Shown: positions 4,323 to 63,178, counted from the stretch's first letter. The stretch: DNA of 64,000 nt from Hydrolagus colliei (GCA_035084275.1 CM068769.1:992001-1056000), one strand, 5' to 3'. Notes: a model not told the origin generated them from the sequence alone. Program-made: numbers and translations.

Positions 4323-4335
4323 AACAACCAGTTGA

Positions 4336-13944: not shown

Positions 13945-13985
13945 AGTTTTTGTAGGGCGGTAACGCTGATCTGTGTCTCAATGTG
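13945..13985 (-). other. Non-canonical RSS: CACATTG-25-ACAAAAACT
   Basis: A 2-nt insertion relative to the 11935 paralog lengthens the spacer to 25 nt. Confidence 0.75.
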
Positions 13986-15941: not shown

Positions 15942-15980
15942 TGTTCTTGTACAGGCTCCTCTGAGACACGCAGCACTGTG
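15942..15980 (-). other. 23-RSS: CACAGTG-23-ACAAGAACA
   Basis: Heptamer 15974-15980, nonamer 15942-15950. Confidence 0.93.
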
Positions 15981-17603: not shown

Positions 17604-17618
17604 GATGCCCCGTCGCGG
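17604..17618 (-). promoter_or_regulatory. CTCF-like core about 25 bp 3' of the RSS nonamer
   Basis: CCGCGACGGGGCATC, one mismatch to CCGCGNGGNGGCA; positionally equivalent to 4297-4311. Confidence 0.4.
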
Positions 17619-17642
17619 TTTAGCAGTAAAATAACCAGTTGA

Positions 17643-17681
17643 TGTTTTTGTCCAGAGCCTCGATAGCACAGCAGCAGTGTG
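17643..17681 (-). other. 23-RSS: CACACTG-23-ACAAAAACA
   Basis: Heptamer 17675-17681, nonamer 17643-17651. Confidence 0.9.
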
Positions 17682-17985
17682 GGCTCCACGGCACAGTAAT
17701 ACACAGCAATGTACCTGATCAGAAATGTGCCAATCCTCACTTTGAAATGTTCATTCGATTTTTTGACAGTGGAGGATAATCGAGCTGGGAAGTCAGGGTT
17801 CCTGTGTACGTTATTCCCTGAACCCCGAAATAGATACACCGGAGCTTGGCTGGAAGCTTGTCTGTACCAGAAGAGAGCAATCGCGTCATTGATTTTCTTG
17901 AAGCTGCAGGACAATTTCACATATTGTGCCTCTGGAATCCATGTTTCTGGCATCGATTGTTTCCCCATTTCATGCAGGCTGCTTC
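17682..17985 (-). pseudogene. TCR V exon, subfamily B: open frame, leader apparently defective
   Basis: Open VKLSC..LFWYRQAS..DFPARLSSTV..AVYYCAVEP. The leader remnant ends near 18141 with a GC donor and stops, a SINE head lies in the intron, and the promoter region is interrupted by a CR1. Confidence 0.75.
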
Positions 17986-18346
17986 CTGTGATTGAAATCG
18001 ACAAGGTTATTGAGAAGCAAGTTTGTATTACATACGGATCCTGCTGCTCGATGGTTAGAACACTAGCCAAATAAGAGAGAAGAGCCAGATTCGATTTCTG
18101 GGCAGTGCAAATCTCAGCTATAATTCTTTACTCCACATGCCTCTGTGATCCTACTAGTAACTAGAAATCCAGGTATTAGTCAATTTGCGCATTGCTAAAC
18201 TAGTACAAATCATTCATAAATTGAAATCAATATAAATAATCTTAATTTCGTCAATGAATCCGTGAAGGTTTTGGGCCACTGTTGAGCGAAACTGGCTGTC
18301 ACGTTTCACCCAGAGAACACATTGTCAATTCGCTTTAAAGTATAAA

Positions 18347-26394: not shown

Positions 26395-27223
26395 GGGAGC
26401 GGGTGGTCCGTGTGAAAAAAATATCACTATATATCTAATATTACTATTAGATAAAATATTAGATTAAATAGATGATATAAAATATAAAATATCATCTATC
26501 GCCAGGCGAGGTGGAGAGAGTGCAGGATAGCACCTGCACTCTCCACCTCACCACCAATGACAACACTAGTAATTGGATGGAGCCGTTTCCATACTGTATG
26601 TACCATTGAAAGATTGGGCTGGGCACAGTGGTGATGCACTCTATAGATACATTTCCATTTTCGTTCTGTGTCATGGTCAGTGGTCTCTGTGTCACTTCAC
26701 TTTCAGCGAGCACACCTGGGGGAACAGACATGCACATTCTAGGAAAGAAACGTGGAAAAAAGCTGAAACTAAAATGCAGTTAATAGGAAAACAAGCATAT
26801 GTTTGTCCAATCTGGGGCTTTACTTACAGAAACACAGAATCATTAAATTGAGGATAATGCGCATTGCAGTGTAACATGGATTCATTCTGATTCCTCGCTG
26901 AGTCTAGTTAAAATCTGTCAGAGAACTGCAATGGGAAATCATCCAAAGGCTGTTTAGCGATTATGAATGTTTCTCGAATACTTTTAGCTGTGCAGGTTAT
27001 AACTATGTTCTGGGTGACGGCTTCACTGACAACTCACTTCCTGTATGTTGCCTTGTGCTACATTCATTCGTCAAGCGACAATCATTAGTGTCAACACTTA
27101 CAGCTGGTAAAACAGAGGCATGTTTGTAGATGACGAAAACACGCCCAATCGTCCTCCCAGCTCGAAAAGTGACACACGTTTTCGAAAGAGGCAAGCTTTC
27201 CAACCATTAAAGTAAAGGACATC

Positions 27224-27540
27224 GAATCTGTGACTCGTGGTCACAGATTTAAAATAGTTTCAAGGCGCAGTAGAGGGGAGCTGAGGAGAATTTTTTTCAC
27301 TCAGGGAGTTGCTCGAATCTGGAATGCATTGACTGAAAAGGTGGTGGAGGCTGATTCGATAACAACTTTTAAAAGGGAATTAGATCTTTATTTAGGGAGA
27401 ACGGGTCTATTAGGCTATGGGGAGCGGGCAGGGCAGTGGGATTGAATCGCTCTTTTCAAAGAGCCGACACAGACTAGATGGGCCGAATGGCCTCCTTTTG
27501 TGCCGTAAAATTCTATGATTCTATGATTCTATGATTCTAT
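27224..27540 (+). mobile_element. 5'-truncated CR1 3' end
   Basis: Nearly identical to the last ~310 bp of the 18347-21264 CR1; (ATTCTATG)n tail. Confidence 0.95.
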
Positions 27541-28242: not shown

Positions 28243-29714
28243 TGATTTTTTTTTTCGTTAATTGAACACACAACAACTGCACACTAGCATCAGGTGAGAT
28301 GTACATAAAGGAAAATCGGATCTCGGCTTTAAGTCCCTCTAAAATTGTATAGTGTTAAACTGAGTTGAGGCACAAAGCAATAATAATTATCATTGGACTC
28401 GACATAACTTTTTCCACATTCTCCACGTATCTTTTGGGACGTCACATAATAATCTGTACAGTGAATTAAGCGCTCATTTGTGGGGAAATTGGTCAGCGAA
28501 TTGAACAAAGCAGGGACCCACAAAGATTCGTGGATGGAAGTGAACAGTTCATCATTTTTTGTTATTATGAAAACAACAATATCCTGGGATTCAATTGGGA
28601 AATGATTGATTATATAAACACGTGCTAACTAATGAAGATGTATTGGACCTTTTCAATAGAACACTGTGGAGAAACTCAAAGCGTGATCTTACGTAATTGG
28701 TGATGACGAAACCCATACAAAAATTAATAACATCTGAAGTGAATGCACTTGGAGCTGTGATACCGCATTCAGCCACTGGGCAGTTGTTGTTTTGTAAACA
28801 CAAGGAGTAATTACAGTGCAACAACGCCAACTGTTGGACATATGGTTGTACTAAAGATATTCACGTCAATGCCCATCTGCCTGGACTTGGGGAGCATTGC
28901 ATTCTCTCTCCATCCCCACAACATTCACCCCCCACCCCCCCACCCCATTCCCCTTTCCAATTCAGTTCCTTATTGCTTTAAGTTATTGGGTGCGTCAGGA
29001 AACTGGTAATAGGGTGCACTGCGGAATTTTAACTAAATACTTTTATTCCTGCTGTTAGCACACATTTGTCTTTCGCATCAGCGCTTTCTGTGTTTGAATT
29101 GCTTCTGTGTATTTTGAATTACAGCAACAAAAGCGTATACTTAGATAGCACTGCTGAAACAGAGTAGAGTGTCAGAGCTCGACACAGTTGTGAAGCCTGA
29201 CGCTGGTCATAATGAATGGGGAAAGGAGCGTAGGTGCACGCACCCCTACATTTATCCACTCACCATCCTCACACAACACAACCAGCTTCTCACCATTCTC
29301 GCCTTCTCGCAGGTCATCTCAATCATTTATATTTACACGAAGTGTATGTAAGTATCAACTGTTTTACTTTATGCTAAACTATGTATTCTATTGGACCTCA
29401 AAATATTTACAGAATCCAATACATTCTCCGCTAATTCTGTGCAATTCACCTAAACATGGGATTTCACAGCTGTTCGAATGGAATGTGCTCTCCCTCACAA
29501 TTAAAAAAATGCATCCTAACCAACCAATTGCTGAGAGTATAAAGCTTTCGATCCGCACACCACAGTGCCTAAGAAAACCAACAACACATTGGGCATGTTA
29601 ATTCAGGTCTGTGTGTGGGACACTGCTGTGTGAAATTGGTTGCCGCAATTCATTTTAAATTTGCTCTGTTTGCTGTGAGGAGCCATGGTTCGCCAATACG
29701 ACGTGAAAAGCTCC

Positions 29715-30365
29715 ATATCAAATTAAAACTACCTCAACCCCGAAGCTGCCGAAACACTTGTGCACGCATACATCACATCACGGCTGGACAACGGAAACTC
29801 TCTCCTCGTCGGCCTCCCCAGTTCCTCCATTCACAGGCATCAGGTCATCCAAAACTCTGCAGCCCGTGTACTATCCAGCATCCGCCTCCGCGACTATATA
29901 ACCCCCACCCACGCCCGTCTCCACTGGCTCCCCATCCTCCAGAGTATCGAGTTCAAGATCCTCGTCCTCAACTTCAGGGCCTTACACGGCCTTGCCACGC
30001 CCTAATTAACCGACTTACATTCTCCCTGTACGCCCACGCGGTCCCTCAGTTCAGTAGGTCTTCGCCTGCTACAAGCCCGACGCCCGAACTGGCCCACCAC
30101 TGGAGGCCGGGCTTTCAGTTTTTCCACTCCCAACCTGTGGAATTCCATCCCCCAATCCCTCCGTTTTTCTTCTTCCCTTTCCTCTTTCAAGGCCGATTTG
30201 AAGACGTTCCTCTTCAACCGTGCCTTTTTTTCCCCCAAAATTTTTTTCGATCTCCCCTACGCGTTTCATCCCCATCCCGAACATTCCCCTCCCAGCTCGG
30301 GTCACACGCCTCCTCTGCAGCGCCTTGGGACGTCCTCCCGACGTGAAAGGCGATTTATAAGTTTA
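29715..30365 (+). mobile_element. L2 LINE 3' fragment
   Basis: HAYITSRLDNGNSLLVGLP..IQNSAARVL..ITP..LHWLP..IEFKIL (L2 ORF2 C-terminus), ending GACGTGAAAGGCGATTTATAAGT..TTG. Confidence 0.9.
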
Positions 30366-31718
30366 AGTTGTTGGTGTTGAAATAATATTATTTTTATTAT
30401 TATTATCATAATGATTGTTAATCTCGCCCCCATTTCAGTATGTTTCTTGTCCCCGGCCCATCCCACACCAGCATTGACAAATGTGCTATCAGCGTATTCT
30501 CTACCAAATTCAGGAACTCCATCCTCGATTCATTTTGCATTCTCACGTCACATTCTAACTTTAAGGCCTACCTTAAAATGTTTCTCTTTAAATCATCATC
30601 ATTAGTCCACCCACCTCCCCCAATCACACACCACTCCTACATTCCCACTCGCCCCCCAAGCGCAACCACCAGCTCAGATAACAACGCCAGACTTTGCAGT
30701 CACTTGGGACGTTGTATCAAAATGAAAAAGTGACTGTATACATGCGATTTGTTGTTGTTATCTCGTCCTGACGCAGACATTTACATGCGATTCTATAGGA
30801 TTCTGATGACAGTCCAGCCCGGCTGGCTGACTCATAGGTCTGCACTGCTGTTGACTGCAAATGCTGGAATATGGTTTGAACTGTAAATTAAATAACTGCC
30901 AATTAAATAAAATAAAACTATTCTAACAATAGTGATAATACTTGCATTGCTTTTTCTACTTTTCAGACCTTAACGACGTCTCAAGGCGCTTCACAAAATA
31001 AATTATAAAGTGAATTGACTGTATATTTTGTCGTCAAAATTCGGCACGCCATTTCCGCATAGCAGTATCCCAAATACAGTCGTTGATTGAAATGACCAAT
31101 TGTATTACATACTTGTTGCTTTATTTTAGACGGATTATTATCTGTCGTGTGGGTGTGGAGTAAGGAAACTTGTCCATGGTCTGCACATAGGTCTGATGCG
31201 TATAAGTCGAGTCCTCTAACAATTGAGCGAAAGGATCTACAGATTTTCAGTTTTCGAACTCAGAGCTAATCAAACTCACGGAGACTTTTGGTACTGTATG
31301 AATGTAACTTTTATGTAATCACGAGAATGTAAAGATTAGCGTTGCTAATCTGTATCTATTGCCTTCTCCTTCTATCTGTAGAGTGTTCCTCTTGACGCCA
31401 GTGATTGAATAATACACACTACAGAATTTTCCTGCTATTATTGCTCAACCCACTAACCCTTACAATCAATTACTTTACCACAATACAGTACGGAGACCAT
31501 ATCATCAAAATAATCCCTTCACTACTGGAACAACATCAGTGAAAACAAGAGCAGTAGGGGACCACAGCTAGTTTTCATATCCCCCCAGCCCCAACTCCAC
31601 ATCACAGATCATGTCTTATCACAAACAAAACATTTGCTTGCTTTCGTCCATTTTTCATCCAAATCATGTCCTATTACATTCTTTATCCTCGCAAACAGGC
31701 AGGAAGAAGCGAGGGATT

Positions 31719-32646: not shown

Positions 32647-33836
32647 ATAGATTCATCGAATCATTGAATGTTACGGCCCAAAAGGAGGCCATTCGGCCCA
32701 TCTAGTCTGTGCAAGCTCTTTGAAAAGAGCGATTGAATCCCACTGCCCTGCCCGCTCCCCATAGCCTAATAGACTTGTTCTCCCTAAATAAATATCTAAT
32801 TCCCTTTTAAAAGTTGTTATCGACTTATCACCACCATTTCAGGCAATGCATTCCAGATTCGAACAACTCGCTGAGTGAAAAAACTTCTCCTCAGCTCCCC
32901 TCTACTTCGCCTTGAAACTATTTTTAATGTGTGACCACGAGTCACAGATTCGCCCACGAGTGGAAATAGTTTTTCTCTATTTGCCCTGTCGAAACCCCTC
33001 ATGATCTTATAAACCTCTATTAGGTCTCCCTTCAATCTTCTCTGCTCTAGAGAGAATAACCCTAGCCTATCTAGCCTCTCCTCATAGCTGAAGACCCTCA
33101 ATCCTGGCACCATCCTAGTAAATCTTCTTTGTACACTTTCCAGTGTATTCACATCCTTTCTGTAGTGTGGTGACCAGAATTGAACACAGTATTCCAGCTG
33201 AGGCCTCACCAAAGTTTTATAGAGGTTAGTAAGCACTTCCTGACGTTTGTACTCTATACCCCTATTTATAAAGCCTAGTATCCCATATGCCTTCTTAACA
33301 GCCTTGTCTACCTGTCCTGCCACCTTCAACGAGTCACTAACACAAATCCCCAGGTCTCTCTGTTCTTTCCACCATTTAAAATTGTACTATCTAGCCTATA
33401 TTGCCTCCCTTCAATTCTTCTCCCAAAATGCATCACCTCACACTTCTCTGCATTAAACTTCATCTACCATGTGTCTGCCCACTTTACCAATTTGTCTATA
33501 TTCTCTTGCAGATGGCTAATACCCTCCCCACTATTTACTATTCTCCCTAAATTAGTGTCATCTGCAAACTTGGAAACCATACTCCGTACACCGAAGTCTA
33601 GATCATTGATGTAGATTACAACCAGCAATGGTCCCAAAACTGATCCCTGTTGCACACCACTGCTCACTTCCCTCCAGTCTGAAAAACAGCCGCTCACTAC
33701 AACTCTCTGATTTCTGACTCGCAGCCAGTTGTGGATCCACGCTGCTACTGTCCCTTTTACGCCATGGGCCTTTAATTTCCTAATAAGTCTCTCATGTGGC
33801 ACTTTGTCAAATGCCTTTTGAAAGTCCATGTAAACT
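32647..33836 (-). mobile_element. 5'-truncated CR1 (RT C-terminal half + 3' UTR)
   Basis: YMDFQKAFDKVPH..FADDTNLG..KWADTW*..RPQLEYCVQFWSP; same subfamily as the 18347 copy. Confidence 0.95.
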
Positions 33837-33959
33837 ACGATATTTGGATGATGTGTTAAAGGGAGAGTGAGACTGGCGAATTGAAGCATCAATTGTGCTG
33901 GGAGAGTGGAGGTTCACCCCGATGGAATATGGGGGAGAGTGTTTGACTCTGACTGGGAT
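33837..33959 (+). repeat. 123-bp inverted duplicate of the SRCR exon 5' end (matches 34528-34650)
   Basis: GGAGAGTGAGACTGGCGAAT..GGGAGAGTGGAGGTT..GACTGGGAT is present in both orientations. This copy keeps TGG where the main exon has TAG. Confidence 0.85.
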
Positions 33960-39486: not shown

Positions 39487-39629
39487 NNNNNNNNNNNNNN
39501 NNNNNNNNNNNNNNNNNNNNNNNNNNNNNNNNNNNNNNNNNNNNNNNNNNNNNNNNNNNNNNNNNNNNNNNNNNNNNNNNNNNNNNNNNNNNNNNNNNNN
39601 NNNNNNNNNNNNNNNNNNNNNNNNNNNNN
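39487..39629. other. Assembly gap (143 N)
   Basis: Run of N. Confidence 1.
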
Positions 39630-48360: not shown

Positions 48361-50439
48361 AGTGACTGAGTACAGTGTAGCTGTAGTGTGGAATTATATA
48401 TATTCTCTATTATCTTTGTCCCTTTGTTTGGCATCTGGATTGCATGTTTGCCTCTATACGTTGTAACTGCGAAACACTTTTCCAGGCTTGTTCAATCTGA
48501 ATGGTATCTACCAGTTTTAAGTTTTAATCAAATGGGTGACACCGCAGTGAATGATGAACTGACTCCAATTTCCTTTTATGTAGCAAAAGTTAATGAAGGG
48601 TGAACAAAAAGCTCATATATAATGCTAAATATACATTTCATTAAATTCATGCATACGAAAGGTTAATAAACGTCTCTGCAATGGGTTTGATTGTGCCGCG
48701 CGAGTGGCTTTGGTGTACGAATCGATAGGGTGCAGTTCACATCAGCTTATTCTGATTGAACAAAACAGACCATCACATCAATAACACACACTGTGAGAAA
48801 AACAATCATATTTCCGTTCAATGTAGCTTTGCAACTCATGTGTTCGTTCATCTTCCCTGATCCTTGAATCGAAAATTATACCAAGACGTTTTGACCCTAA
48901 ACGTAAAATCATTTAACTTTACAGTATTATCTGTAAAGCGCATTCAGACTTCTAGAAGATGTGCAAAGCGCGATAACAAATGCAAGGATTACTATTCTTA
49001 TTACTGTTTACTATCCAGTAACGTAGCACACGCTTATACATACTAAGGCTGCAAAACAATCATTGCTGATCGCCCAAGGATTCACCTGGTCAACAAAACA
49101 TTTTCTAATCAATATTGTCATTTGAAACATCAGCGAAGAATCATAAGGCTTTCTAGCGGAATTAACGCTGTATTTTCAGCAAGCGGTGTCCAATCTTTTG
49201 GCTGCTGTCGGACGGATTCCGTAATTGAGTAACATCGCATGAGCGAAAAGGTTTGTGTTCCCCTTCCACTAAGATAGGAGTTGAAAACAGCGTGTTTTCG
49301 CAAAGGAAGCATACCTTAGAATGCTCGTCTCTGCCTGCTCAGCACCTAAGCTGGAGATGGGATTTGTAAGATGTGGGGGAGGGAGGGACAAAGCTCATTG
49401 AAAGAGCAGTCAAGCGGTTATATCTCATTATATCTGATGAATGGTCACCGTCGTGAAACATTAACTCAGTAGGAGTGGAGTCCTGTAGCTCAGTGGTTAG
49501 AGCACTCGCCTTACATGTGTGAGCTAAGTACTCAAATCCAAGTGTTTCAGGGCAGAACATTTGGCAAGCTTTCTTAATCCACACGACGAATAATAGTTGC
49601 TTCATAACACCGCTCCGCTCAACAATTCTCTCTCCCTCTCCCAGTCTCGTTCTCTACTACCCCTGTCTCTCAGCTTCGGCGACAGACACTCCCTCTCATC
49701 CACATTCATTATCTCACAATCCCCCTGTCTTACCTCCCATTCAGAAACTCTCTTCTCTTAGCCTATCTTACTGTCACTCTCTTCCCCTTTCTCCAATTTT
49801 CTTTGTCTCCATCCCCTGTGTTCCCCGCTCACGCTCGCTCCCCACTCTCATAATCATTCTCTCAATCACTGGTCTCTACACTCTCCCCATCTCCCTGATA
49901 ATCTCATTTTATCGATCAATCAGTTTCAAACACTTTCCTACCCGATGGACTATGCAGTAATTTAAGCAAAAGCATTTCTGATTCAAACACTCACTCTCAT
50001 TCATTCTCGTTATCTTTTACCTTCTCTCTGAAACCCAGTCTCTCCTTCTCATGCAATTTCTCCCTCTCTCTCACTATCTCTCGCACATCCAATCTCATTC
50101 TCCCATTCAGTCTCCCCCACCCCCTTTCTCACTCTCGCATTCTCTCTTTCACACACACAAAACCACATACAGTCTCTGCCTCTTTCTTCCTCTTTCTGAA
50201 TCACTCACTCTCTCACTCACACACTCACGCACTCACGCACTCACTTAATCAGTTTATCTCTCACTGAAAGTTTCTCTCACTCATTCTCTCTTTCTCAAAC
50301 GGTCACCCGCAGTCTATGTGATACTCATTTTCTCAGTGACAGATGAAGTAAATTGTTGTCAGAGCGAAGAGCATTGACCAATGTGACGCCGGGAGAAGGA
50401 GAGATGAGTGAGAGCACCTCGTGGTCACCAGCCTCTGAG

Positions 50440-50560
50440 CTACAATCTGACCATGGCGTAGAATATACCAGGTTCCACGTTGGTGTCTCGGGCATTTTCA
50501 CTCCTGTTTCCTAACACCAGATTTGCGTAGGTGATATCAGCGTGATATCAATTAGCACAC
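50440..50560 (-). pseudogene. Terminal cytoplasmic exon of the Ig receptor with two ITIMs (ITYANL, IFYAMV), frameshifted by an 11-bp duplication
   Basis: CGGCAG acceptor. Removing one copy of the imperfect repeat at 50529-50550 gives VLIDITYANLVLGNRSENARDTNVEPGIFYAMVRL*. Confidence 0.8.
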
Positions 50561-51344
50561 CTGCCGAAGGACATTGGGAACCCCCCATTCCTCCCTCCAA
50601 TACCCTACCACCACCGCTGAGAGGAGCCAGACCATAGATCCTGTGTGTGTGTTTGGCTGCGTGAGTATTTCTCTCATTCATTCGTTCACTCATTCAGTCT
50701 CCACTTGTTGGGGTGAGAGTGTGCATTCGGATTGCAGCATCTACGTTTAGATCCCCACACTCCAGACCCCGTTTGGTTTTTCGCATACTTGCGTCTCTCA
50801 TGGAATTGATCAATTCACTACTCTTCTTCGACCAAATTCCTACCCATATCGTACCTGCCTTCTTGATCCCCAAACCACAACACATGGCTAAATTCCTGAC
50901 TTACTAGCGCTTTGGGATGTACATACACATATGCTGACATTTACAAACAGAAACATAGAAACACACAAAAATACACAGGCATTCAAATATACAACAACAA
51001 CAATAACAACATCTTAATCTTATAAAGCGCCTTTAACGTCTGGAGGTCACACATAAACACACACATGTACGTAGATATGAATACAAGTACACAGAGACAA
51101 ACACACAGATACTCAAAGGTACACAACCAGAGACAAATTGCCTACCTACGCAGTGCTACATCCGTCTGACACATAGCCTGGACAAAGTATTTTTCAGGCT
51201 TAGACAGGACGGCGCTCGTATGACACAGAAACTTATCTGGGCTAAGCCTGGCTGACACAGGGCGTGAGCTATACTGACAAGGGCTGAGCTGGCTTGATAC
51301 AGGACCTGATCCAGGCTAAAACAAATGCTCCTGTTACCACTCAC

Positions 51345-51385
51345 CTCTGGAGTCTCTGTTCGTGGAGCTGTTCTCACTGTAGCAT
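51345..51385 (-). CDS. Cytoplasmic exon of the Ig receptor (YATVRTAPRTETPE)
   Basis: TTGTTTCAG acceptor, GTGAGT donor, 41 nt. It joins the 19-nt exon at 53452-53470 to give ALYATV. Confidence 0.6.
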
Positions 51386-52389
51386 CTGAAACAATCGAAA
51401 ACGTGATTTATCCGCAGTAATGTTTCAGTAAATCTCAATGGTATTCATTAATAATATTGATGATACTAATAGATTCACCTTAGCATTATTAAAGAAAATA
51501 ACAATAATAATTAGGCGACAAAGAGTGATAGGATATTAATTCTTATATGTAGAATAAATCCTTATCATCTCCATCCCAATGTGCTTCAGATTAGCTGCGG
51601 TTTTATGTAGTGACTATGTCCTCCCGAAACAAAGGGCGCTCTAGAAATGCTTTGGTATTACAACTGTTGTTGTGGTTTATAAGCGAGGGCGACACAACAT
51701 CCAATTTGCTCACATTGGATTCCAACAGACACATACTTAGACCACGTACAGACACACAGGCAGCCACATACACACCCACAGCTTAACAAAGATAGAAAAA
51801 AATGGGACAGAAAGAGAGAGCGAGGCTAACAGAACAATAATATTAATCATCATCCTGGAATTTTATCAAGTGCACATCTTCAACATCAACATCTTGGCTT
51901 CAAAAAGCGCTTTACAGAATATATTGTGAATTTTGTGGGCGAAAAGCGGCAGCCAATTGCGCACATCAGTGTCCCACAATGAATTCACATGCCATCTCAT
52001 TTGGAATTTTTGGAGGACTTTTATGAGCAAGCTATGGATATATGTATCTGTCTGTGACCGGCTTCTTTCCTTCTAGGTTCAAACCCAGGACAACTCTCAC
52101 TCACATATAATGCCGCTGGCTTGTGCGCCGCCTCCCGCAGGTACGCTTCTGAAAAAGAAATCAGAGAGGAAAGCGGAATGAATTCACTGCTGTTTTATAC
52201 AAGAGGAAAACAGAGCTCAAATCTGGGCTTGTTTCGGCGCCAACAAAAAATATTGTCTGTCAACTGTGGAATAATGAACCTGACAGGATTTTTGCTAAAT
52301 GAGCAGCAGGTACATGAGGGACGGAATGATCTGTGCCTTACCAGTGAGGGGTGGGGGGGGGGGGTGGGTGTAGAGAGGGGGGTGTAGAA

Positions 52390-53035
52390 CCTAGATTCAC
52401 TAGTTTGGTACCTGGGATGGGAGGAGGAGCTATGTGAATAGGTTGAGCAATCTCGGCCAGTGTTTGGTGGAATATAGAAGAATCAGAGATGATCTTACAT
52501 CAACCTATCAGATTATTAAGGGGCACAACAGAGTAGATAGTGGGAGACAATTCCCCTGGTTGGAGAAAATATAAACAGGAAGACAATATTACAATTAATG
52601 GGTCAGCCATTTCGCACTGAGTTACGGGAAAACGTCTTCACTCAGATGGTCGCGAATTGATGGAACTCTCTTCCCTCAAATGGCTGTAGATGCTCAGTCC
52701 TTGAAAAGAATAGTCGGAGTCGGAGTAAGTGGAGGGAGAGTAGGAAAAGGGATAGAGTTAGTTGGATAACAGAAGGCACGGTCGAAGAGGAAGTTCTTGA
52801 GACCGGCCTTGAAAGAGGAAAGAGTGGAAGAGAGGCGAAGAGAATGCAGGATGGAATCCCACAGGGTGAGAGCATAGAGGATGGCCAACTCCACGACCAC
52901 CGATTGTGATGCGGTTGGGGCGTTGGATGTGGAGTAGGCAATGCGTGCTGAGTGATAGGGAGACAGCAGTTAGGAGGGATAGGCGGGGGCAAGTCCTTGA
53001 ATGGCCAGCAAGGTGAGGATGAGGATTTTTAATTC
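52390..53035. mobile_element. Old CR1 3' fragment (+, ~52390-52700) abutting an L2 fragment (-, ~52705-53035)
   Basis: Degenerate CR1 C-terminus and UTR; L2-type LWDSI..LSSFKAGLKNFLFDRAF. Confidence 0.6.
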
Positions 53036-53451
53036 AACCACAGACGGACAATTGACCTCAAATTATGCATCTGGATAGCATCTCACAAGGTCATTGCGTA
53101 AAATGGGGAAAACTGTCGCTAAGGTTTATTTCTGCTTGCAAATTTAGGACCACAGTTAGGGCTTTGCCTTGCAAAATGAGCGGTAAAATACATTATACTC
53201 AGTGCCTGGCCTGCCCTTCTGATTCTTGACAGTGAGAGTTTGCGTGAACACTATGGAGACAGACCAAGGAATTGGTTCATAGAGATCTCCAGTTTGGAGC
53301 GGGAACAAAGGGAGATATGTTGGGGAGAGAGAGATATAGAGAATGAGCAAGTAATCAGATTAGAATAGAGAGCTTCAGTGAGGGAGCGAGCAACAAAACA
53401 GAAAGGTTGCGGATACAACACAGAATGGGGTAAGTGAAGCAATGTACTCAC

Positions 53452-53470
53452 ACAGTGCTTTACTGTTTGC
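53452..53470 (-). CDS. Small cytoplasmic exon (ANSKAL)
   Basis: TTTTGTATTTGCAG acceptor and GTGAGT donor. It is open only with phase-0 entry, so a further micro-exon is needed after the TM exon (candidate 53924-53934). Confidence 0.45.
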
Positions 53471-54304
53471 CTGCAAATACAAAATATAATATAGGTTAAA
53501 AATGATTAAGTACTTGTGTATTGTTGCAAGATAAGTAATGATAATCCTCCCGATTTTCTAGTGTCAAAACTCTTCACAAGCAATCGTTGTCAAAAACACT
53601 TTCCTTTAAACCCCACCCCCCACATCAATCAATCAATCCTTTTACCAGCTTGACAATCAAAAGAGCTAGATATGCATATCTGCAGCACAAAATGTTGGGT
53701 AATTGTTCTGAATTCAGTCGCATCTGTTTATCTAACAATATCAACAACAGAAATAACAAAATCGCTACATCAGTCGGAACCCAGTTCGTCGATTTGGGCG
53801 TGAATTTCCAACAGATGATAATTGTTCAAAAATTAACAATGATAATAACAATCATGTCACTTAATCCAAGGTTGTGGTTGAAAAACTGCTGTGCACAATC
53901 GGCAGCTGAGTGAAAAATGATACAGTCAGGTCACCTGAAAGTATATGCTCTGAACTTTTTTTGAGACGCCTAGAAGAGGTAGAGAGCACACGATCGAATG
54001 GAAGATTTATCACTATAATTAACATAACACTGATAATTATTACTAATGATGTTTTGTGATATTACGATGAATATTATTAGTGTCACTATTGTCATTTTTT
54101 AAAACCAATATTGTCGTTATTATCATTAGTATTGGTGTCCTTATTATTTCTTTGATATTTTTTATTGGATTGTTATCGCAGTTCTCAGTTAACCAACTAC
54201 AGAAATACACTGGATGGAAACAGACAGTGGTTGGCTCCAATTGTGCCTCTTTCTTTAGTTCCAACAATTCTACGCTACATTCAGTGACAATAAGGAACAC
54301 TCAC

Positions 54305-54403
54305 CTCTCTGATACACATAGCATCCAAGAATAATCATTATGATCACTATCGCAGTGAGAATCCCCACTGTTAGTCCTGCTGTAGTCCTCCATGTCCAAT
54401 TTG
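54305..54403 (-). CDS. Transmembrane exon of the Ig receptor (uncharged TM)
   Basis: CCCTCTCTAG acceptor, GTGAGT donor, 99 nt: NWTWRTTAGLTVGILTAIVIIMIILGCYVYQR. Confidence 0.85.
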
Positions 54404-54669
54404 CTAGAGAGGGAAATGCGCAAAGTGTTACTTGACGATTTGAAAAGCTAATGTCACAACACAAATAATAATTTTAAATATTTTAAAGAGGTACCATCTT
54501 CTCCTGACGTCTCAGGATGTGAAAGTGACTCAGGAATGTAAATGTGTGCTTTGCATTTCTCTGTTCCAATTGAAACAGTTGCATTCACCATCAGCCTGAC
54601 CTCATTAGCAACGCAACTTGGGTTAGCTTGATCAATAACAGTTGTTGTATAATAGCGCGATTTGCGGAA

Positions 54670-55110
54670 ACAAACTAATAGCGTTCGAGCGCTATCACGT
54701 CAGGAGTGCATACCAAGAAGCCGGACAGTCATTGTGTCAGACCCGAGCTGGGGATAGGTACGAATTAGTAGGTCCAGATGTGGCAATCGAAGATGAGGGT
54801 CTTGAGGGGCGAATTGAAAGAGGCCAGGAAGTGGACGAGGCGTTGGGATTGTGGGATGGAGTTCCAGAGATTGGGGCCAGAGCAGCTAACGGCTCGCCCG
54901 CCATTGGCGGAGCGGGTGGATCGCTGGACCTGGAGCAGGCGAGGGCCTTCTGAGAGGAGGGTGGCGAGCAGGTTGTTAAGGGTGTACAAGGTCAGGGATT
55001 TAGGATAGGGCTAGATTGTGGAGGGCTTTAAATATCAGGACCAGGATATTGAATTGGATCTTCTGAATGATGGGGATACAATGGAGTCGTGCGATTTTGG
55101 AGGAGAGTGT
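54670..55110 (-). mobile_element. L2 3' fragment
   Basis: GGRAVSCSGPNLWNSIP..LKTLIFD-type L2 C-terminus and tail. Confidence 0.65.
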
Positions 55111-55518
55111 GTCTCGAAGGTTGGAGCGTTAGAGGATACGGGCTCAGAGTTCTGGATCATCTCCAAACTTTAGACGGAGGTTTGGGGAAGGCCGCCAAGC
55201 AGGGCATTGGTATAGTGAAGACTGGATTGAACAACAACAGCAACTTGGATTTAGACAGCGCCCTCCACGCTGTGTGGCGTCTCCAAGTGCTTTAATGAAT
55301 TAATCAGGGCATGACAGAGGATTTTATCCCCCTTGGGAGTGAGTTAGTTGCGGAGTTAGACAATATTGCAGAGACAAATGTTTCATATGTTCATATGATC
55401 CACCGCTGTAAATGGTGGTTATAAGAGGAGCAGCTGCAAATTGTCTAAAGGGAAACATGCTATTGTGTGACAGTTTACATAACTCTTATCCAGTTTAGTG
55501 ATTTTACTCAACTCTTAT

Positions 55519-55802
55519 CCAGTACAGAGATTCCAACTGGATCACTCTCTGGTGATGTGATCTCCCGGCCGCCTATGTGTGTACTATATTTACACGAGTA
55601 ATTTCCTGCACTAATGTTCGATGAGGTGAATGTGGCCGAGTTGTTATTCTCTGGAGCTGGCTGTGATGTGACAAACTCGCCGTTTCTGTAGAAAGAGAAT
55701 GTGCTGCTAGGATAATTCCCAGAACAGGAGATCTCAGCGCTATCTCCTCTCACAATCTCAGGGGAACCATGTTTAGGGACACGTTGGGTTTCTGGAGCGG
55801 AT
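55519..55802 (-). pseudogene. Ig C2 domain exon F (membrane-proximal)
   Basis: DPLQKPNVSL..VRGDSAEISCSGNYPSSTFSFYRNG..AGNYSCKY..SPESDPVGISV. 284 nt (1-nt loss) and donor GT>AT. Confidence 0.9.
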
Positions 55803-56204
55803 CTGGAATAAAAACACAGTAACGTTCATCACACAAACACTCCCTCTGCGCCACACACCAGAGTAAAACTGCCCATATACTTGTATCACAGACTAGAGTG
55901 TAGGTGGGAAGATTGAATGGCAAACCTCAGCGAGATTTTCTTCACACAGAGAGAGGTGATGCGCTGGCTGGGAGATGGCTGATTAGGTGGGGCATCGAGA
56001 CAAAGGTAAAACACACAGATCCAGATTAGGCTAGGCGAAAGGGAAGACAGCCAGATTCTCTCTGTTGATCTACAGACATCTCTGTACAGAACAGGATACA
56101 ATCACGACCAGCGAATCCAACCGTGATTTCAGGAGCAATATCGTGGAACGAGATGTTGGGACTCGCTGGCTAACTCACAGCGTTGAATTAAACACTGCGA
56201 AGCC

Positions 56205-56440
56205 CCACCGCAAGCTCAGCCCCCACCCTAGGGTCTGCACCAACCCTAAGATCAGTTCCTGCAACCAGCTCAGCCCCACCCAAAGATCAGATCCGAAAAC
56301 CAGCTCAGCACTCAATCCCAATTCAGTCCAGCTCCCAGCTCAGCCCCAACAGCAACAGAGTACCCACAACCAGCTCTGCATCCATCCACAGTTTATACGA
56401 TCACCCAAGTTCAGCCTCCATCCCCAGCTCAGTACACCCT
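56205..56440. repeat. Degenerate CCAGCTCAGC-rich tandem repeat
   Basis: Repeated CCAGCTCAGC/CCAGCTC motifs at irregular spacing. Confidence 0.55.
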
Positions 56441-57659
56441 TTCTGAAGCTCGGTTTGAATCACCAGATCTTGTGTCACACGTGGGCTGTTACATGCGATG
56501 TACATCCCCGAGATAAATATGTACATTTTAGGTACAGTGCTGCGCAGAAATTCGATGTTAGATTCGCCAACATATTTTCTCTATTTTTCAGCTTTCTGAC
56601 GGAATCCCACTTCCATGCCTTTTTATGGGACACTGATGTGCGCAATTAGGCTGCTGAGTTTCTGCCACAAATATACATATCTCCTTCATCATGCTCCCCT
56701 GATCTTGTCCCCACCTGAATGTACAGCGCCATGGGAAGTCCTCTCGACTTCAAAGGCGCCATATAAATTTAAGTTTTGATTGATTGATCAATTCATTGAT
56801 AGGTGTTATTCTTTTGATACATAAGATAAATTTGCTTGCTTTACTTAATATAAAAGAGAATTGCTGTTGGTGCTTCAATATGTTGTTAATCGCGATTCCC
56901 AATCCCTTTATCTTTTCCATGTCTTTTTTTGTTCCAATCTGAATCGTTTCATATTTCTACATACAGAATCACAATTTGCAACCTTCACCATCATCAAAGT
57001 CGGCCTTTCAGCCATTTTGCCAGTTTTCTTTCTATCTGCATTCCAGAAACACCCTGATTGACCCACTCTTCCGTCGTTGAAGATCCCTCTCCTAAATGTC
57101 CCCATGTGCTGCACTGTTGGGTTTTCCTCTCTCTCGGATCCCACCACAGCTCGAGAGTCAAACTGGGACAATTCAACACATTTCGGCGCCGAATGTTCCT
57201 GCCTAATATCAGCTATTATTGAATGGCAATTCACCTTACCATTATTTGCTGGGCACTGCTGTTAATGCTTTTTAAATCGAAGTTGTTGTTGCTGCTGTGA
57301 GTCAATAGGATTCTGTGCTTGCTACGAAATAATAGGCTGCACTTCGAAAGGGTTTCAACCGTGATTCTGACATTACAATTAGTGGGATTATTGTACGAGA
57401 CAATTAAACGATTATCTTGCTTAGTCTAAACAAACATTCCTGTTCTCTTTATCGCAAGCCCTTGACTGGCAAGTCAGAAGAATAAAATTCAATTGCCAGT
57501 TAAGGATAAACCATATGAGGTTACCTAACTCAAAACACAGGCATATTTTTACTCAGCAACAAGTGGGAGACTGGTTGTTCGTCGAAAGGCGTTTCACCTA
57601 CAAAATACAGTCAACCCATTTTAAAATGCTGTCCGGGTCGCACTTTTATCTTAACTTAT

Positions 57660-58320
57660 CTTGCCGCAATTATCTTACCACCCACGCTGTCGAAACACTC
57701 GTGCACGCGTACATCACCTCAAGGCTGGACTATGGAATCTCTCTCCTCGTCGCCCTCCCCAGTTCCTCCATTCACAGGCTGCAGGTCACCCAAACCTCTA
57801 CAGCCCGTGTATTATCTCGCAACCGCCTCCGCGACCATATAACCCCCACCCTCGCCTGTCTCCACTGGCTCTCCATCCTCCAGAGGATCGAGTTCAAGAT
57901 CCTCGTCCTCACCTTCAAGGCCTTACATGGCGTTGCCCTGCCCTACTTAACCAATCTACTCTCCCCCTACAAGCCCACCGGAACCTCCGTTCAGCAGGAT
58001 TTGGCCTGCTCCAAGGCCCTCGCCCGAACCGCCCAAACACTGGAGGCCGGGCATTCAGTTTTTCTGCTCCGAACCTATGGAATTCCATCCCCCAATCCGT
58101 CCGTCTCGTTTCTTACCTTTCCTCGTTGAAGGCCGGTTTGAAGACTTTCCTCTTCGACCGTGCGATTTATTCCACCCCGAATTTTTCGACCTCCCCTAAG
58201 TGTTTCACCCCTTCCCGAACACTCCCCTCCCAGTTTGGGTCACACGCCTCCTGTGCAGTGACTTGGGACGTCCTTCCGGCGTGAAAGGCGGTCTATAAGT
58301 GTAATTTGTAATTGTTTTTG
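57660..58320 (+). mobile_element. L2 LINE 3' fragment in a receptor intron
   Basis: AVETLVHAYITSRLDY..LHWL..QRIEFKIL..GGRAFSFSAPNLWNSIP; same family as 29715. Confidence 0.9.
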
Positions 58321-58451
58321 TTGTAGAAGTCTACCAATGAGCTATCAAAGGCAACTATTAAACTTATAGATCGACTATAACAGTTCAATGGAAAAACAAC
58401 TTATTTTGTGAGACACTGCAAATCGGCGAGAATCCAGACTCCCGCTCTTAC

Positions 58452-58777
58452 CCCACTCAATCATTCCCACTAGTTTGCTCTCTGTTGAATTGATCTCTCG
58501 TCCGTCTATTTGTTTGGTATATTTACACCAGTATCTTCCCGTCATGATCATGAAAGGAGTAAAGGTTATTCTGTAACGATATTTCATTGTTCTAGAATCA
58601 TATTGTGTCGCTGTGTAACGAGATTGTGGACCCGTTTGTGATGCGATGAACTCGCCGTCTCTGTATAATGAGAATTTGCTGTCAATATAGTTCCCAGAGC
58701 AGGAGTCTCAGCACTTTCTCCTCTCATAATTGATAGGTAATCTGGCGTCAAGGCAATGGTGGGTCTCTCAGGTGAAT
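58452..58777 (-). pseudogene. Ig C2 domain exon E
   Basis: DSPERPTIALTP..MRGESAE[1-nt deletion]SCSGNY..LYRDGEF..TGRYWCKY..; intact splice sites and a ~14-codon internal expansion. Confidence 0.88.
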
Positions 58778-59260
58778 CTGAAATTCAATCACAGTGAATA
58801 TCGTCTCAAAAATGCTCGGTCTAATGTGTGCCTGACATTCAACATCAGGATCGAACTTAACTCTAGTAATTGCCTGTGACATTGTTTTTGTCTGTGATTT
58901 AAGGTGATGCAAACCTGTGTAGTGTTCTCAACCCCAAGAATCTCTTTGAATCTTCTCCCTGAAATCGATTGTATGTTTGGCTCCGTGTCTCACACTCTCT
59001 TCTCTAAGTTAAATTTGCTTTACTTCGCCAACCCCTGTAACTTCTAAATCAGTAGGTACCGGGTTGTAGGTCGATTGACCTTTACCTCGAAAGGTATGCA
59101 GTGAATGTACCGTATAATATGTTCTTTGGAGCCATTTGGGACGTCTCCGTTCATATGAAATGTAAGTATTATTATTGTCCGTCTGTAACTGGTCATAAAA
59201 TTCCAGGTTATTTTGTGACACTTTCTAGGTCGATCAGAGTATCCAAGCTCTTCCTCTTAC

Positions 59261-59440
59261 ATTGTACAGAGATTCTCACTCCTTCGCTCACTGGTGAGTA
59301 GAAATTTCGTCCTTCTATTTGTTTGCTATATTCACAGGTGTATTTTACTTATGCAATCTGGGTTTGTGTAAACGTTATTTGGCAATGATGGTTATTCACA
59401 CCAGGTTTCAGCAGCCCTTTATAGCTGTCTCTCTGAGACT
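59261..59440 (-). pseudogene. Ig C2 domain exon D (3' half only)
   Basis: RDSY..ITFTQTQIA*VKYTCEYSKQIEGRNFYSPVSEGVRISVQ with a GTAAGA donor. The downstream intron is homologous to that of exon B. Confidence 0.75.
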
Positions 59441-60183
59441 AGGTGATAGCTTGGCTTAGTGTTTTAAACTCTTTTCTACGAGTGTGAGGGTTCCTGGTAT
59501 ATGAGATGTTGAGATTTCCCTTCCCCGCCCTCTCCACTAAGTTCAATATCATCCCAAACCAGACAACCCACCATCACCGTTACATACACGACACTCCTTC
59601 ACTTCATCACACCACCATTTGCCCCTCACTCCCCATCATTGTTATCCGGCTTTCAACCACTCTGTCCATTCTGAATAGATCTGCAACCCGGGCACGGTCT
59701 GAGTCGCTCACACTCTCCCATCGTTCAATGTCTTTCTGAACCTCTACCGACTGTCTCGATACTGAACACATTCGTAGGAAGGGTCAAGTAGCTATTGTTC
59801 TTATGGAACACACTGTCGCATTTAATCGAAGAACAAAATTGAATTTTCCTCATTGTGAACCCTCGACTTCCAACCAGGTGTAAACAATTTGACCCTCCGT
59901 CTGAGTAGAAAGACTCTTCAGCTTCCCTGACTCTAACACCCCACACAGCCGTTTGTATAAGCAAGAACATGTCGGAATCCAGTCATTAGGCGAATGGCGT
60001 TTCACGACAAAATGAGCAATCAAAACTATTTACAATACTTTATCTACAACAATTGTGGACGTCTAACATTATGGTATCAAACGAAAGTATTACTTTTACT
60101 AGCTGCCTGTAACTGATCAGAAGATAAGCAGGTTATTGTATGAGTCGTTGCAGATTGGTGAGAGTCCACACTCTCACACATAC

Positions 60184-60458
60184 CCCACACAATGATTGCC
60201 ACTCGCTCACTCTCTGGTGACTTGAGGTCTCGCCCGTCTTTTGCTTTGGTATAATTACACCAGTAATAGCCTGTCATGATCACGAATGGTTCAAATATTG
60301 CACTCTAATAATATCGGAGGGTAGTTTGTGATTTGATCGTCACGGCGCCTCTGTATAACGAGAAATTGCTGCCACGATAGTTCCCAGAGCACGAGATCTC
60401 AGGAGCTTCCCCTCTCATAAACACCCGGTAATTTGGGTTCAGTGTCATGGTGGAGGAT
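60184..60458 (-). pseudogene. Ig C2 domain exon C
   Basis: ..MTLNPNYRVFMRGEAPEISCSGNY..YY*..TGYYWCNY..SPESERVAIIV; 275 nt (frameshift) plus an internal stop. Confidence 0.88.
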
Positions 60459-61358
60459 CTGGAAATAAAAAAACATTCAAACAAACGTGACAAACGCTCC
60501 CTCTAATCTGTGCACTACATTGAAAACCAGGATCGACAGTATCCCCAGTACCAGCTGTTAGATTGTGATTTAAGATGAGCAGATCCGTGTCTTGTTATCA
60601 ACTCCATGAATCTCTGAAACTTCTCTCTGCGATCGATTGGTTTTAGTCATTTTCACAACTCGCAAACGCCCCCACACCTAGCACAGCCTTGCCTCGTCTC
60701 GACAATATCTCCCACTGCTTCCCTTCATCCGCTACTCGGACCCCACGAAAAGGGTGGCAAGCCTGGAACTAAACACGTCCTCGTATTTCCCGATTTGAAA
60801 GGCAGTGTGTAACGGCAATTACTGTTGGATTTTAGACCATGTCACCAATGGGAAATTGGATTGTGTAAATTGGACATTATGTTTGCCATAAAATAACAGC
60901 GACTGCTCTTTCAATCCTTGAGATATTTTGTACACCTGCCGTCAAGGATTATTTCGTTTTTATAATTACTATTCTGTGAGGCTTCGTTCTAAAAATGTTG
61001 TGTTTCTTGATCGAAGCCAAAGTTGATGGGAATGTTGTTATCCGCGCCCAAAAGCAGTTGTGAGTGCGTGCATTTGATTTCTGGGTGGGAAGAAATATTT
61101 GGCAAATTCGCTGATTTCACCAACGTCTGTAACCTCGAAATGTGTAGGAACCGGGTTGTAAGTCGATCGGTCTTTCACACACAATATATGCAATCAATTT
61201 ACTATATAATATGTTCTGTATAGCCATTTGAAACATCTCCGGTTCTATCAAATGCAAGCAGTAATAGTATAATTGTCCTTCTGTAGCTGTTCACAAAAGT
61301 GGTGGTTCTTGTATGATATTTTAAATGTTAGTGAGAGTATCCAAGTTCTCGCTCATAC

Positions 61359-61643
61359 CCTGTACAGATATGTGCACTGATTTGCTCTGCTGCATGTCGA
61401 AATATCGTCCGGAAGAATTTTGGGAATACATACAGCTGTAAAATGCTGCTAGTATCTTCGCTAGCGTAAATGTTACAGTGGAAGAACTCTGTGTATCAGT
61501 TTTTAATGCGACAAAATAGCTATCTCTAAATAAAGAGAATTTGCTTCCTGGATGATCCGCAGAAAAATGGATCTCAGCGCCTTCTCCTCTCACAAACACA
61601 CCGGAGACTTGGTTCACTGTATTCGTGGGTTTCTCAAGTGGAT
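61359..61643 (-). CDS. Ig-like domain exon B (open, first Cys replaced by Phe)
   Basis: 285 nt, intact splice sites: DPLEKPTNTV..VRGEGAEIHFSADHPGSKFSLFRD..FYSCMY..VHISVQ. Confidence 0.85.
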
Positions 61644-61960
61644 CTGAAAATAAAATAGAGGAGAGATATCTAATCTGACCTAACCTGTGACAAATCTCCT
61701 GAAATTGCTTTTGGTTGAGGTGTAGACATAGGCAAACTCTAAACTTTACTTAACGTAGTTTATCAGCAGTTATTAGCAACGTTCTCCTTGAGATTGGTTA
61801 TCAGTCTGACACCATATCTCACTCTATCGTCTTTGTACAGCTGTCCTAAATATCCATTAACCAGATAGTTTGGAGATTTGGGCTGTCAGAATACAACTTT
61901 TCACGATCAAGATGCTAGTTCTCACCTTCTTTTCTTTCAACAGTATCTCCCTCAACTTAC

Positions 61961-62027
61961 CTATGTGGCATCCTGAAGCAGCAGACAGATAAACTACACA
62001 TACCCACAACACCAAAAAAAATGTCAT
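61961..62027 (-). CDS. Signal-peptide exon of the Ig receptor gene
   Basis: MTFFLVLWVCVVYLSAASGCHI-G with a GTAAGT donor, in phase with exon B. Confidence 0.8.
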
Positions 62028-62893
62028 CCTCCACTCGCTATCCCTCACCGCAATTATCAGATTCCGCTCAACTTCTCCGCTCCCTCCACACAGTCAAATT
62101 CACATTCACCGCCCACACCCTCCACCAACATCAAATTCACCCCGAACCCCAGAAACATCGGTATCAGGGTTTCAGCCATTCAGTCTCTTCTCAATGTATC
62201 TGCATCCCTGACTCGCTCAATGCTTTCCCTCGTTCCAGATTCATTTTGATGACCGAGTATTTTGACCATGCTTTAGGTCGTCTTTCCCGCCATTTTACTG
62301 CACAAATCCAGGTGAAATTGCGAAGCCTGTCAGGTACACGGCTTGTTCCACCCCCAAGTTGAAATGCACTGATTAATATCAGTTAGAGTTGGTTTAGAAT
62401 TAAATTATCCACTGTGTGTGGGTCGTTTTGTCGGTAAAAAAAAATGCTGGTGTTTGCCGTGAAATGAAAATCACTACATTTTGGAAATCATTTTGGACGT
62501 GTTCCTGACATAGAGGTTCATCTTTAATGTTCGTATACTTTTTCTGTGAGGCATCGATTTGACGGAATTATCTTTCCTGATCGAGGCAAATGAAACAGGT
62601 GCTAACATTGCGAGCGTTCCCAAGTGAGAGGGCATAGGTTAAATTCCAGGGAATGGATAAAACTTTGGTAAGAATCCTCATTCAGCGTGGCCGTATTTAC
62701 GCCAAATTAGTTAGGAACCCTGCTTTTATTCGATTGGCGTTTAGCCCACAAAATATACAATCAACAAAGTGTTGTGTTTGGCACTTTGAGATGCATTAAA
62801 CAATAGCTTGATATCAAAAGAAAGCATTCTACATATCGAGATTATGTAAAAACTACAAAAATGTTATTGAGTGAGGTTTTACACTGCACTTAC

Positions 62894-63178
62894 CTATCAC
62901 AGTGATTCCCACTCGCTCGCTCTCTGGTGATGTAAACTCTTGCCCTTCTATACGTTTGATATATTTACACCAGTAATTTCCTGCTCTGATCGCCGATGTG
63001 ATGAATGTAGTCATGTTCTTATTCTCTGGAGCTGGTTGTGATGTCATAACCTCGCCGTCTCTGTATAAAGAGAATGTGCTGCCAGGATAATTACCAGAAC
63101 ACGAGATCTCAGGGCTTTCCCCTCTCACAAACAGCCGAAAATCTGGCTTCAGGGAAATGGCGGGTTTCTATAGCGGAT
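62894..63178 (-). pseudogene. Ig C2 domain exon A (upstream paralog or orphan exon)
   Basis: 285 nt, DPL*KPAISL..VRGESPEISCSGNYPGS..AGNYWCKY..SPESERVGITV. Has TAG where exon F has CAG. Confidence 0.9.

Follow-up and report, generated by a model that had tools for sequence, protein, structure and literature searches.

Mammalian receptors belonging to the leukocyte receptor complex (LRC), such as LILRB and PIR-B but also KIR, OSCAR and NKp46, carry tandem C2-type immunoglobulin (Ig) domains. LILRB and PIR-B are type I proteins with an uncharged transmembrane (TM) span in their inhibitory forms and several inhibitory motifs of the immunoreceptor tyrosine-based type (ITIMs) about 20-25 residues apart. 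The teleost LITR and FCRL-type receptors are expanded, fast-evolving multi-Ig families with ITIM-bearing members, and LITRs combine FcR-like distal with LRC-like proximal domains. Published work on LRC evolution stops at bony vertebrates. It is regarded as uncertain whether the LRC has a counterpart among the bony-fish families at all, and cartilaginous fish are not treated (Guselnikov and Taranin 2019, PMC6557307). Here we analysed a 64-kb stretch of DNA from the cartilaginous fish Hydrolagus colliei (GCA_035084275.1 CM068769.1:992001-1056000; 'the window'). An earlier reading of this DNA (the original prediction) had proposed an inhibitory multi-Ig receptor gene next to variable (V) segments of the T-cell receptor (TCR). 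We found what is very probably a dead copy of such a receptor, belonging to a large family of LRC-type Ig and ITIM receptors in holocephalans and elasmobranchs that is often fused to SRCR domains.

Layout of the receptor locus

All parts of the receptor unit (leader, Ig, TM and tail) lie on the minus strand. The unit begins with five Ig exons of full length (A, B, C, E and F), a sixth reduced to a fragment (D) and a leader exon; a TM exon coding for an uncharged span and a tail of four short cytoplasmic exons complete it (Table 1). The predicted span, 50440-63178, proved exact, position 63178 being the first base of exon A and position 50440 the last base of the stop codon. Six-frame scans and self-BLAST revealed no Ig-related exon in the window beyond these six, among which DNA identity is 72-79%. 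The open Ig pieces matched the Pfam models Ig_3, Ig_2, ig and the HIDE1 Ig model. In addition, a profile of seven open window pieces (profile A1), searched against 1.84 billion representative proteins, matched 713 of them at E<1e-3 and 296 at E<1e-10. The Pfam matches and these 296 library proteins exclude a chance resemblance of the exons.

When compared with the exons of a paralogous Callorhinchus milii locus (L001) and with C. milii proteins, the window exons have the family's Ig form: 285-nt phase-1 exons, a DPLxKPxISL start and the pattern C..LYR..GxYxCxY..SPESERV. The predicted DPLxKP start is a motif of the family; the 'x' of exon A is a TAG stop codon. Agreement with the family extends to the TM exon and to the tail of four exons, whose first Tyr codon is divided into T and AT. 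An N-terminal SRCR exon is missing from the unit, and a separate SRCR relic lies elsewhere in the window.

The leader was found with a filter for an ATG, an open frame, a hydrophobic core and a phase-1 donor. Five leader-like open reading frames (ORFs) passed on the two strands of the window; the one within the receptor unit scores best, and at least two of the others lie directly upstream of V segments. Since the leader showed no similarity to paralog leaders at the DNA or protein level, it was accepted on form only. It sits between exons A and B, about 870 bp from exon A. Neither a TM exon in the interval from exon A to the leader nor an SRCR exon in that from the leader to exon B was detected. 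Lying upstream of the leader, exon A is thus the orphan of a lost upstream unit. That is, a leader and five full-length Ig exons exist as predicted, whereas their order is not collinear and fragment D comes in addition.

The tail was reconstructed against the paralogs P0017, P0085 and P0003 and locus L001. Across the junction of cytoplasmic exons 1 and 2 (cyt1 and cyt2), ATT ATA T/AT GCT ACA GTG reads I-I-Y-A-T-V, the slash marking the splice junction within the Tyr codon; an intact paralog forms V-T-Y-A-T-V across the equivalent split codon. ALYATV, one of three predicted tail motifs, was absent in an exact search of all six frames: it is cyt1 read in the wrong frame, and the frame fixed by the paralogs yields IIYATV across the junction. 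The other two, ITYANL (50535-50518) and IFYAMV (50466-50449), are present in the last exon. IIYATV, ITYANL and IFYAMV fit the ITIM consensus [SIVL]xYxx[IVL] and are conserved with respect to paralog tails, and they are not expressible in this copy. Leader, Ig exons, uncharged TM and ITIM-type tail match those of intact paralogs, and the inhibitory LRC-type layout of the original prediction, including its uncharged TM, was borne out at this level.

Table 1. Coordinates of the receptor exons, related SRCR remnants and V segments in the window. P0001, P0003 and P0013 are C. milii proteins of the family.
Feature	Position	Strand	Remarks
Ig exon A (orphan)	63178-62894	-	285 nt, phase 1-1; acceptor ttccag, donor GTAAGT; 57-68% identical to domains of P0001/P0003/P0013
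Leader (signal) exon	62027-61961	-	MTFFLVLWVCVVYLSAASGCHI; ends in phase 1, GTAAGT donor
Ig exon B	61643-61359	-	285 nt; frame open, splice sites intact, divergent
Ig exon C	60458-60184	-	275 nt
Ig exon D	about 59349-59261	-	3' third of an Ig exon, VKYTCEYSKQIEGRNFYSPVSEGVRISVQ
Ig exon E	58777-58452	-	326 nt
Ig exon F	55802-55519	-	284 nt
TM exon	54403-54305	-	ANWTWRTTAGLTVGILTAIVIIMIILGCYVYQRG; no charged residue in membrane span; splice sites intact; 65% identical to P0001 residues 588-621
Juxtamembrane cytoplasmic mini-exon	53470-53454	-	3' end approximate
Cytoplasmic exon 1 (cyt1)	52148-52105	-	RSVPAGGGAQASGII + T; splice sites intact; contributes I-I plus base 1 of the first ITIM's Tyr codon
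Cytoplasmic exon 2 (cyt2)	51385-51345	-	AT + ATVRTAPRTETPE; intact; completes IIYATV
Last cytoplasmic exon	50541-50440	-	ADITYANLVLGNRSENARDTNVEPGIFYAMVRL, then stop codon 50442-50440; two ITIM-consensus motifs
SRCR pseudo-exon of the family	34625-34318	-	V side of the N gap; splice sites preserved; 59% identical to P0003
Inverted partial copy, 5' end of SRCR exon	33855-33959	+	stop codon; abuts LINE fragment 32820-33913
V segment	2185-2562	-	without Cys23 and WY motif
V segment	4278-4583	-	
V segment	11848-12306	-	YYC end lost
V segment	13800-14354	-	reads open
V segment	15821-16375	-	reads open
V segment	17552-18127	-	reads open
V segment	24985-25161	-	fragment
V segment	26495-26779	-	truncated after framework region 2; nearest to receptor

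Disabling lesions

For the calling of lesions, the window exons were aligned with three intact Ig exons of L001 (C. milii GCA_018977255.1, WEZY01001424.1). Relative to intact paralogs, the copy carries about 12 lesions of several kinds: three in-frame stops in receptor exons, three frameshifts (exons C, E and F), an insertion of 42 nt, the truncation of one exon and the shortening of the mini-exon, the loss of one donor, the deletion of one acceptor, and a Cys-to-Phe change. The stop in exon A (63170-63168, DPL*KPAISL) results from CTC CAG becoming CTA TAG. Exon B is free of indels and has lost its first canonical (disulfide) Cys to Phe (TGT to TTT at 61566-61564); it is also the most divergent domain (identity 35% with exon A, 41% with a domain of P0001). 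In exon C, a 10-nt deletion directly after the acceptor shifts the frame and an in-frame TAG follows at 60307-60305, while about two-thirds of exon D are deleted, leaving only its last ~90 nt. Exon E has a 1-nt deletion near 58706, a frameshift before SCSGNY, and the 42-nt insertion at about 58623-58582. Another 1-nt deletion, near 55772, shifts the frame of exon F, whose donor reads G/ATAAGA for G/GTAAGA (GT to AT at 55518-55517). Further downstream, the mini-exon contains an in-frame TAA (53462-53460) and is shorter than the 28-nt exon of an intact paralog, and the last cytoplasmic exon has lost its polypyrimidine tract and its AG acceptor to a deletion of 11 nt. Only the leader, TM, cyt1 and cyt2 exons appear undamaged.

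With its stops, frameshifts, exon D remnant, exon F donor and last-exon acceptor, the locus does not have the form of an intact gene. The original prediction had reported none of these lesions, which lie in most exons, and an ITIM-bearing receptor gene can no longer be maintained for this multiply disabled copy. Under no canonical splicing pattern does the frame stay open between the leader and the ITIM exon, and the copy would be unable to signal. We read the window from 50440 to 63178 (minus strand) as a decayed, non-functional copy, consisting of a unitary multi-exon pseudogene and one orphan Ig exon, of a cartilaginous-fish type I receptor family, with a probability of roughly 0.87.

Against this reading, decay is uneven: the leader, exon B, the TM exon, cyt1 and cyt2 are each intact when taken singly. 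Assembly error could also account for three of the lesions, the single-base or short indels; it does not typically produce stops, a changed donor, deletions of 10 and 11 nt or a truncated exon. Moreover, a LINE (long interspersed nuclear element) ORF of 687 aa and several V exons, which serve as a control of base accuracy, read open in the same window. Given these open frames and about 12 lesions of several kinds, assembly error is a poor explanation. The locus would be a relic of birth-and-death turnover in the family, left at the edge of, or within, a TCR alpha/delta-type V array. As a dead gene it is of little importance in itself; moderate interest attaches to the family and to its occurrence beside V segments.

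Affinity of the Ig domains and alternative readings

Among the alternatives, the best-surviving but still quite improbable one is a partly functional locus, in which exon skipping yields a short product (leader and exon B, with or without TM) that acts as a decoy or soluble protein, or which serves as a gene-conversion donor for its neighbours. The leader, exon B and the TM exon do keep their frames and splice sites, and since the Ig exons are all of phase 1-1, skipping preserves the frame. However, exon B is the domain that diverged most and that lacks the first disulfide Cys, a TAA stands in the mini-exon after the TM exon, and the ITIM exon has no acceptor.

We then consider whether the domains belong to the LRC type at all. 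A profile of 17 sequences of family Ig domains (profile A5) was searched against all PDB chain sequences. It matched PIR-B at 1.6e-16, LILRB2 at 7.5e-9, OSCAR at 4e-8, LILRB1 at 4e-7, NKp46 at 1e-6 and KIR3DL1 at 9e-5; FceRIa (3e-4), FCRL4 (4e-4), CSF1R (1e-3) and GPVI (4e-3) followed. As judged by this sequence profile, the family domains are of the LRC type. The window copy also has, as sequence, the further marks of LRC receptors: C2-type Ig exons, a leader with a single uncharged TM, and ITIMs. We found no LRC framework gene (human 19q13.4 set) in the window; what surrounds the receptor unit there is TCR V segments together with transposable elements.

It is very improbable that the domains instead derive from another branch of the immunoglobulin superfamily (FcR/FCRL, CEACAM or a non-immune adhesion family) and resemble LILR only superficially. 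The relatives do bear mixed automatic names (IGSF1-like, A1BG-like, CEACAM5-like, FCRL5, CD166-like, DMBT1-like), and a single exon alone matches FceRIa nearly as well as LILRB2, the latter at 3.9e-4. Yet the family profile puts LRC members clearly ahead of FcR and FCRL structures, so that the domains are not closest to FcR/FCRL D1-D3. CSF1R is the only match outside the LRC and FcR groups, and the best Pfam matches include the Ig model of HIDE1, a protein encoded in the LRC. A grouping with a non-immune family, named by the original prediction as a possible outcome against it, was not observed.

The least probable reading is a functional inhibitory receptor gene whose defects are sequencing or assembly errors: the exon order, the splice phases, the TM exon and the three ITIM-consensus motifs are all properly placed and short indels are of a kind that draft assemblies can introduce, but the lesions are independent and include three nonsense substitutions, the frames of the 2-kb LINE ORF and of nearby V exons are open, and the searched libraries contain no identical or near-identical protein (57-68% at best).

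A receptor family in cartilaginous fishes

The best A1 matches were C. milii models: XP_007882647 ('IGSF1-like') with six Ig domains and a TM, XP_007910466 (uncharacterised) with two SRCR and four Ig domains, a TM and a tail with VTYATV, IIYANL and PVYATV, and XP_007910588, named 'A1BG-like'. Next came proteins of Narcine, Pristis (sawfish), Pristiophorus (sawshark), Scyliorhinus (catshark), Heterodontus (bullhead shark), Hypanus (ray) and Carcharodon (great white shark; 'LILRA6-like'), and further out a turtle 'IGSF1-like' protein, an eel 'FCRL5' and a skink protein. The batoid relatives from Narcine and Pristis (P0002, P0004 and P0005) are giant proteins of 1679-3218 aa with 13-25 tandem Ig stretches matched by the profile. 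In a word-indexed search with the intact C. milii member P0162, 14 of 14 close relatives were from C. milii and were spread over at least six contigs, to which WEZY01001424.1, the contig of L001, adds a seventh. The automatic names of these 14 range from OSCAR to CD163/M130-like, DMBT1-like and TRIM17-like.

Intact members matched the Pfam SRCR model together with Ig_2, Ig_3 and HIDE1-type Ig models, and some, for example P0001, lack SRCR domains. In intact members, a leader is followed by 0-4 SRCR domains, by C2 Ig domains of the LRC type, 2-6 or more in number, and by an uncharged TM; the tail is encoded by four small exons. Each Ig domain corresponds to one 285-nt phase-1 exon starting with DPLxKPxISL, and the tail carries xxYATV, IIYANL and P(V/I)YATV.

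The window exons belong to the family of the chondrichthyan models named IGSF1-like, A1BG-like, OSCAR-like, LILRA6-like, DMBT1-like and CD163 (M130)-like; XP_042201732, XP_007910466 and XP_042201399 of C. milii are examples. Common to those models and the window copy are the form of the Ig exon, a TM exon with ANWTW...GL.VGI.TA and the split-Tyr four-exon tail, at 57-68% amino acid identity. In contrast to the window copy with its dozen or so lesions and no SRCR exon inside the unit, the models are intact. Their names are automatic best-match labels and do not imply orthology. A1BG and IGSF1 themselves are mammalian LRC derivatives (PMC6557307). Since the window locus is only 57-68% identical to family proteins, it is a separate, unannotated copy. 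At the DNA level, the C. milii loci L001-L004 gave paralog-level matches to the window (77-86%) or none.

The original prediction had suggested an uncharacterised chondrichthyan receptor family. Chondrichthyan it is, and no paper on it was found: in the literature on sharks and cartilaginous fish with LITR, LRC, FCRL, LILR, ITIM or SRCR, we encountered no description of the family. RefSeq and Ensembl models of its members do exist under automatic names. The family is thus LRC-like, often SRCR-bearing and ITIM-tailed, and has gene models while being so far uncharacterised.

How does the family compare with the systems described above? With LILRB and PIR-B it shares the tandem LRC-type C2 domains, the type I topology, the uncharged TM and the spaced ITIMs. 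This likeness is one of domain type and need not mean orthology to any mammalian LRC gene, and the window copy is dead. In contrast to LILR and KIR, which are devoid of SRCR domains, many family members carry them at the N-terminus. The genomic setting also differs from that of the mammalian LRC, with TCR V segments instead of an LRC-type neighbourhood. Among family members, no activating partner with a charged TM was noticed. The family resembles LITR and FCRL-type receptors as an expanded multi-Ig family with ITIM members; unlike in LITRs, its domains are of one homogeneous type (mean column identity 71%), with a far weaker match to FcR/FCRL structures than to LRC structures. The Pfam SRCR domain is shared with the group B SRCR receptors DMBT1, CD163 and WC1, and the SRCR relic of the window was likewise matched, but these receptors lack LRC-type Ig domains and the ITIM tail of the family. 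The combination of SRCR, LRC-type Ig and ITIM appears peculiar to the family.

By analogy with LILRB, PIR-B and KIR, intact members would inhibit signalling: Src-family kinases would phosphorylate the ITIM tyrosines, SHP-1, SHP-2 or SHIP would be recruited, and signalling through immunoreceptor tyrosine-based activation motifs would be damped.

Two gene models of C. milii deserve mention. P0194, a TRIM17-like model on a contig of 240,910 bp, combines SRCR, Ig and PRY/SPRY domains and is probably a fusion of neighbouring genes, which hints that B30.2/TRIM genes neighbour the family. Such genes are typical of major histocompatibility complex (MHC)-related regions. Locus L004 (MU249884.1) contains two divergent family units, at 150-19200 (minus strand) and 51000-66150 (plus strand), inside a single 65-kb gene model of 878 aa.

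Association with TCR V segments

A linkage between Ig and TCR loci and between antigen receptors and the MHC was proposed earlier for C. milii (Venkatesh et al. 2014, PMC3964593). For elasmobranchs, an antigen-receptor complex around TCR alpha/delta has been described, in the main text of which LRC-like and SRCR genes are unmentioned (Flajnik et al. 2025, PMC12227049). In the H. colliei window, the V segment nearest to the receptor stop codon is 23.7 kb away and on the same strand, close to the 24 kb that had been predicted. The single N run of the window (143 Ns at 39487-39629) lies between them, and a scaffolding error there had to be considered.

Two findings support the linkage without relying on this gap. 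The first is the family's SRCR pseudo-exon, which lies on the same side of the gap as the V segments. It carries a TAG at 34557-34555 and a frameshift near 34456, its homology continues into the introns, and no Ig exons follow it. The second comes from C. milii scaffold MU249905.1, where the intact member P0162 comprises three SRCR and two Ig exons (tblastn), a TM and three Tyr motifs. About 2 kb past its stop codon lies a V pseudogene that reads ...LYWYRHHPG...AAT*YCALTSD, with CACAGTG, 23 nt of spacer and ACACAAACC after it. We located it at 30875-31225 of L002 (minus strand), and the same V appears at 4016-4366 of L003. TAA replaces the Tyr before Cys104, whereas the heptamer is perfect and followed by the 23-bp spacer and a nonamer. 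Next to it is a truncated V (L002 29770-30066, minus strand), and two more family genes follow, so that the V pseudogene is flanked by tandem SRCR-Ig-ITIM genes. This V pseudogene is closest to a C. milii V group that was also retrieved by a window V; its PDB matches mix antibody V and TCR V domains.

With these two supports, the predicted position beside a TCR V array, of alpha/delta type, stands. At three other sampled paralog sites on other scaffolds (L001, L004 and L005), we detected no V segment; for L005, a DNA search and ORF listing returned neither a match to the recombination signal sequence (RSS) nor an obvious V-like ORF. The association is therefore real yet not universal. Taken together, the observations of the original prediction were partly confirmed and its interpretation is partly supported.

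In at least two places, the distance between family members or relics and TCR alpha/delta-type V segments is no more than a few kb to about 24 kb, which offers a mappable test case for a primordial linkage of innate Ig receptors and antigen receptors. A bolder interpretation, which we consider unlikely at present, is that the LRC has its true counterpart in cartilaginous fishes in this family, whose genes would be physically interspersed with the V segments of the TCR alpha/delta array. The family would then preserve an ancestral neighbourhood of natural killer/LRC and antigen receptor genes, in the sense of a proto-MHC or antigen-receptor complex, and the fusion of SRCR and Ig domains would have been innovated, or retained, only in chondrichthyans. 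The evidence for interspersion comes from scaffold MU249905.1 and the window. Immune multigene families relocate through duplication, and a single pseudogene does not establish an ancestral linkage.

V segments and transposable elements in the window

Eight V segments, all on the minus strand, are present in the window, and at least four of the eight look defective (Table 1). In the PDB, they come closest to V domains of TCR alpha and delta, and four of the eight are followed by an RSS with heptamer, 23-bp spacer and A-rich nonamer. Protein searches with the V segments matched only C. milii and short ENA fragments.

The nearly intact LINE lies inside the V array (18266-21165, plus strand) and encodes, besides the 687-aa endonuclease/reverse-transcriptase ORF, a further 192 aa. 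Degraded LINE copies were found at 32820-33913 (minus strand), at 27173-27442 (plus strand) and elsewhere in the window. Low-complexity tracts just 3' of the receptor stop codon (49500-50330) and in the intron before exon F (56035-56650) form SLSLSHTH- or PQ-rich ORFs, which are not genes. A repeated element encoding '...LWNSIPQS.R...SFKAGLKTFLFDRAF' occurs at 29573-30377, 52697-52969, 54768-55010, 57425-58284 and other positions, in copies that are 65-84% identical, and sits inside three introns of the pseudogene.

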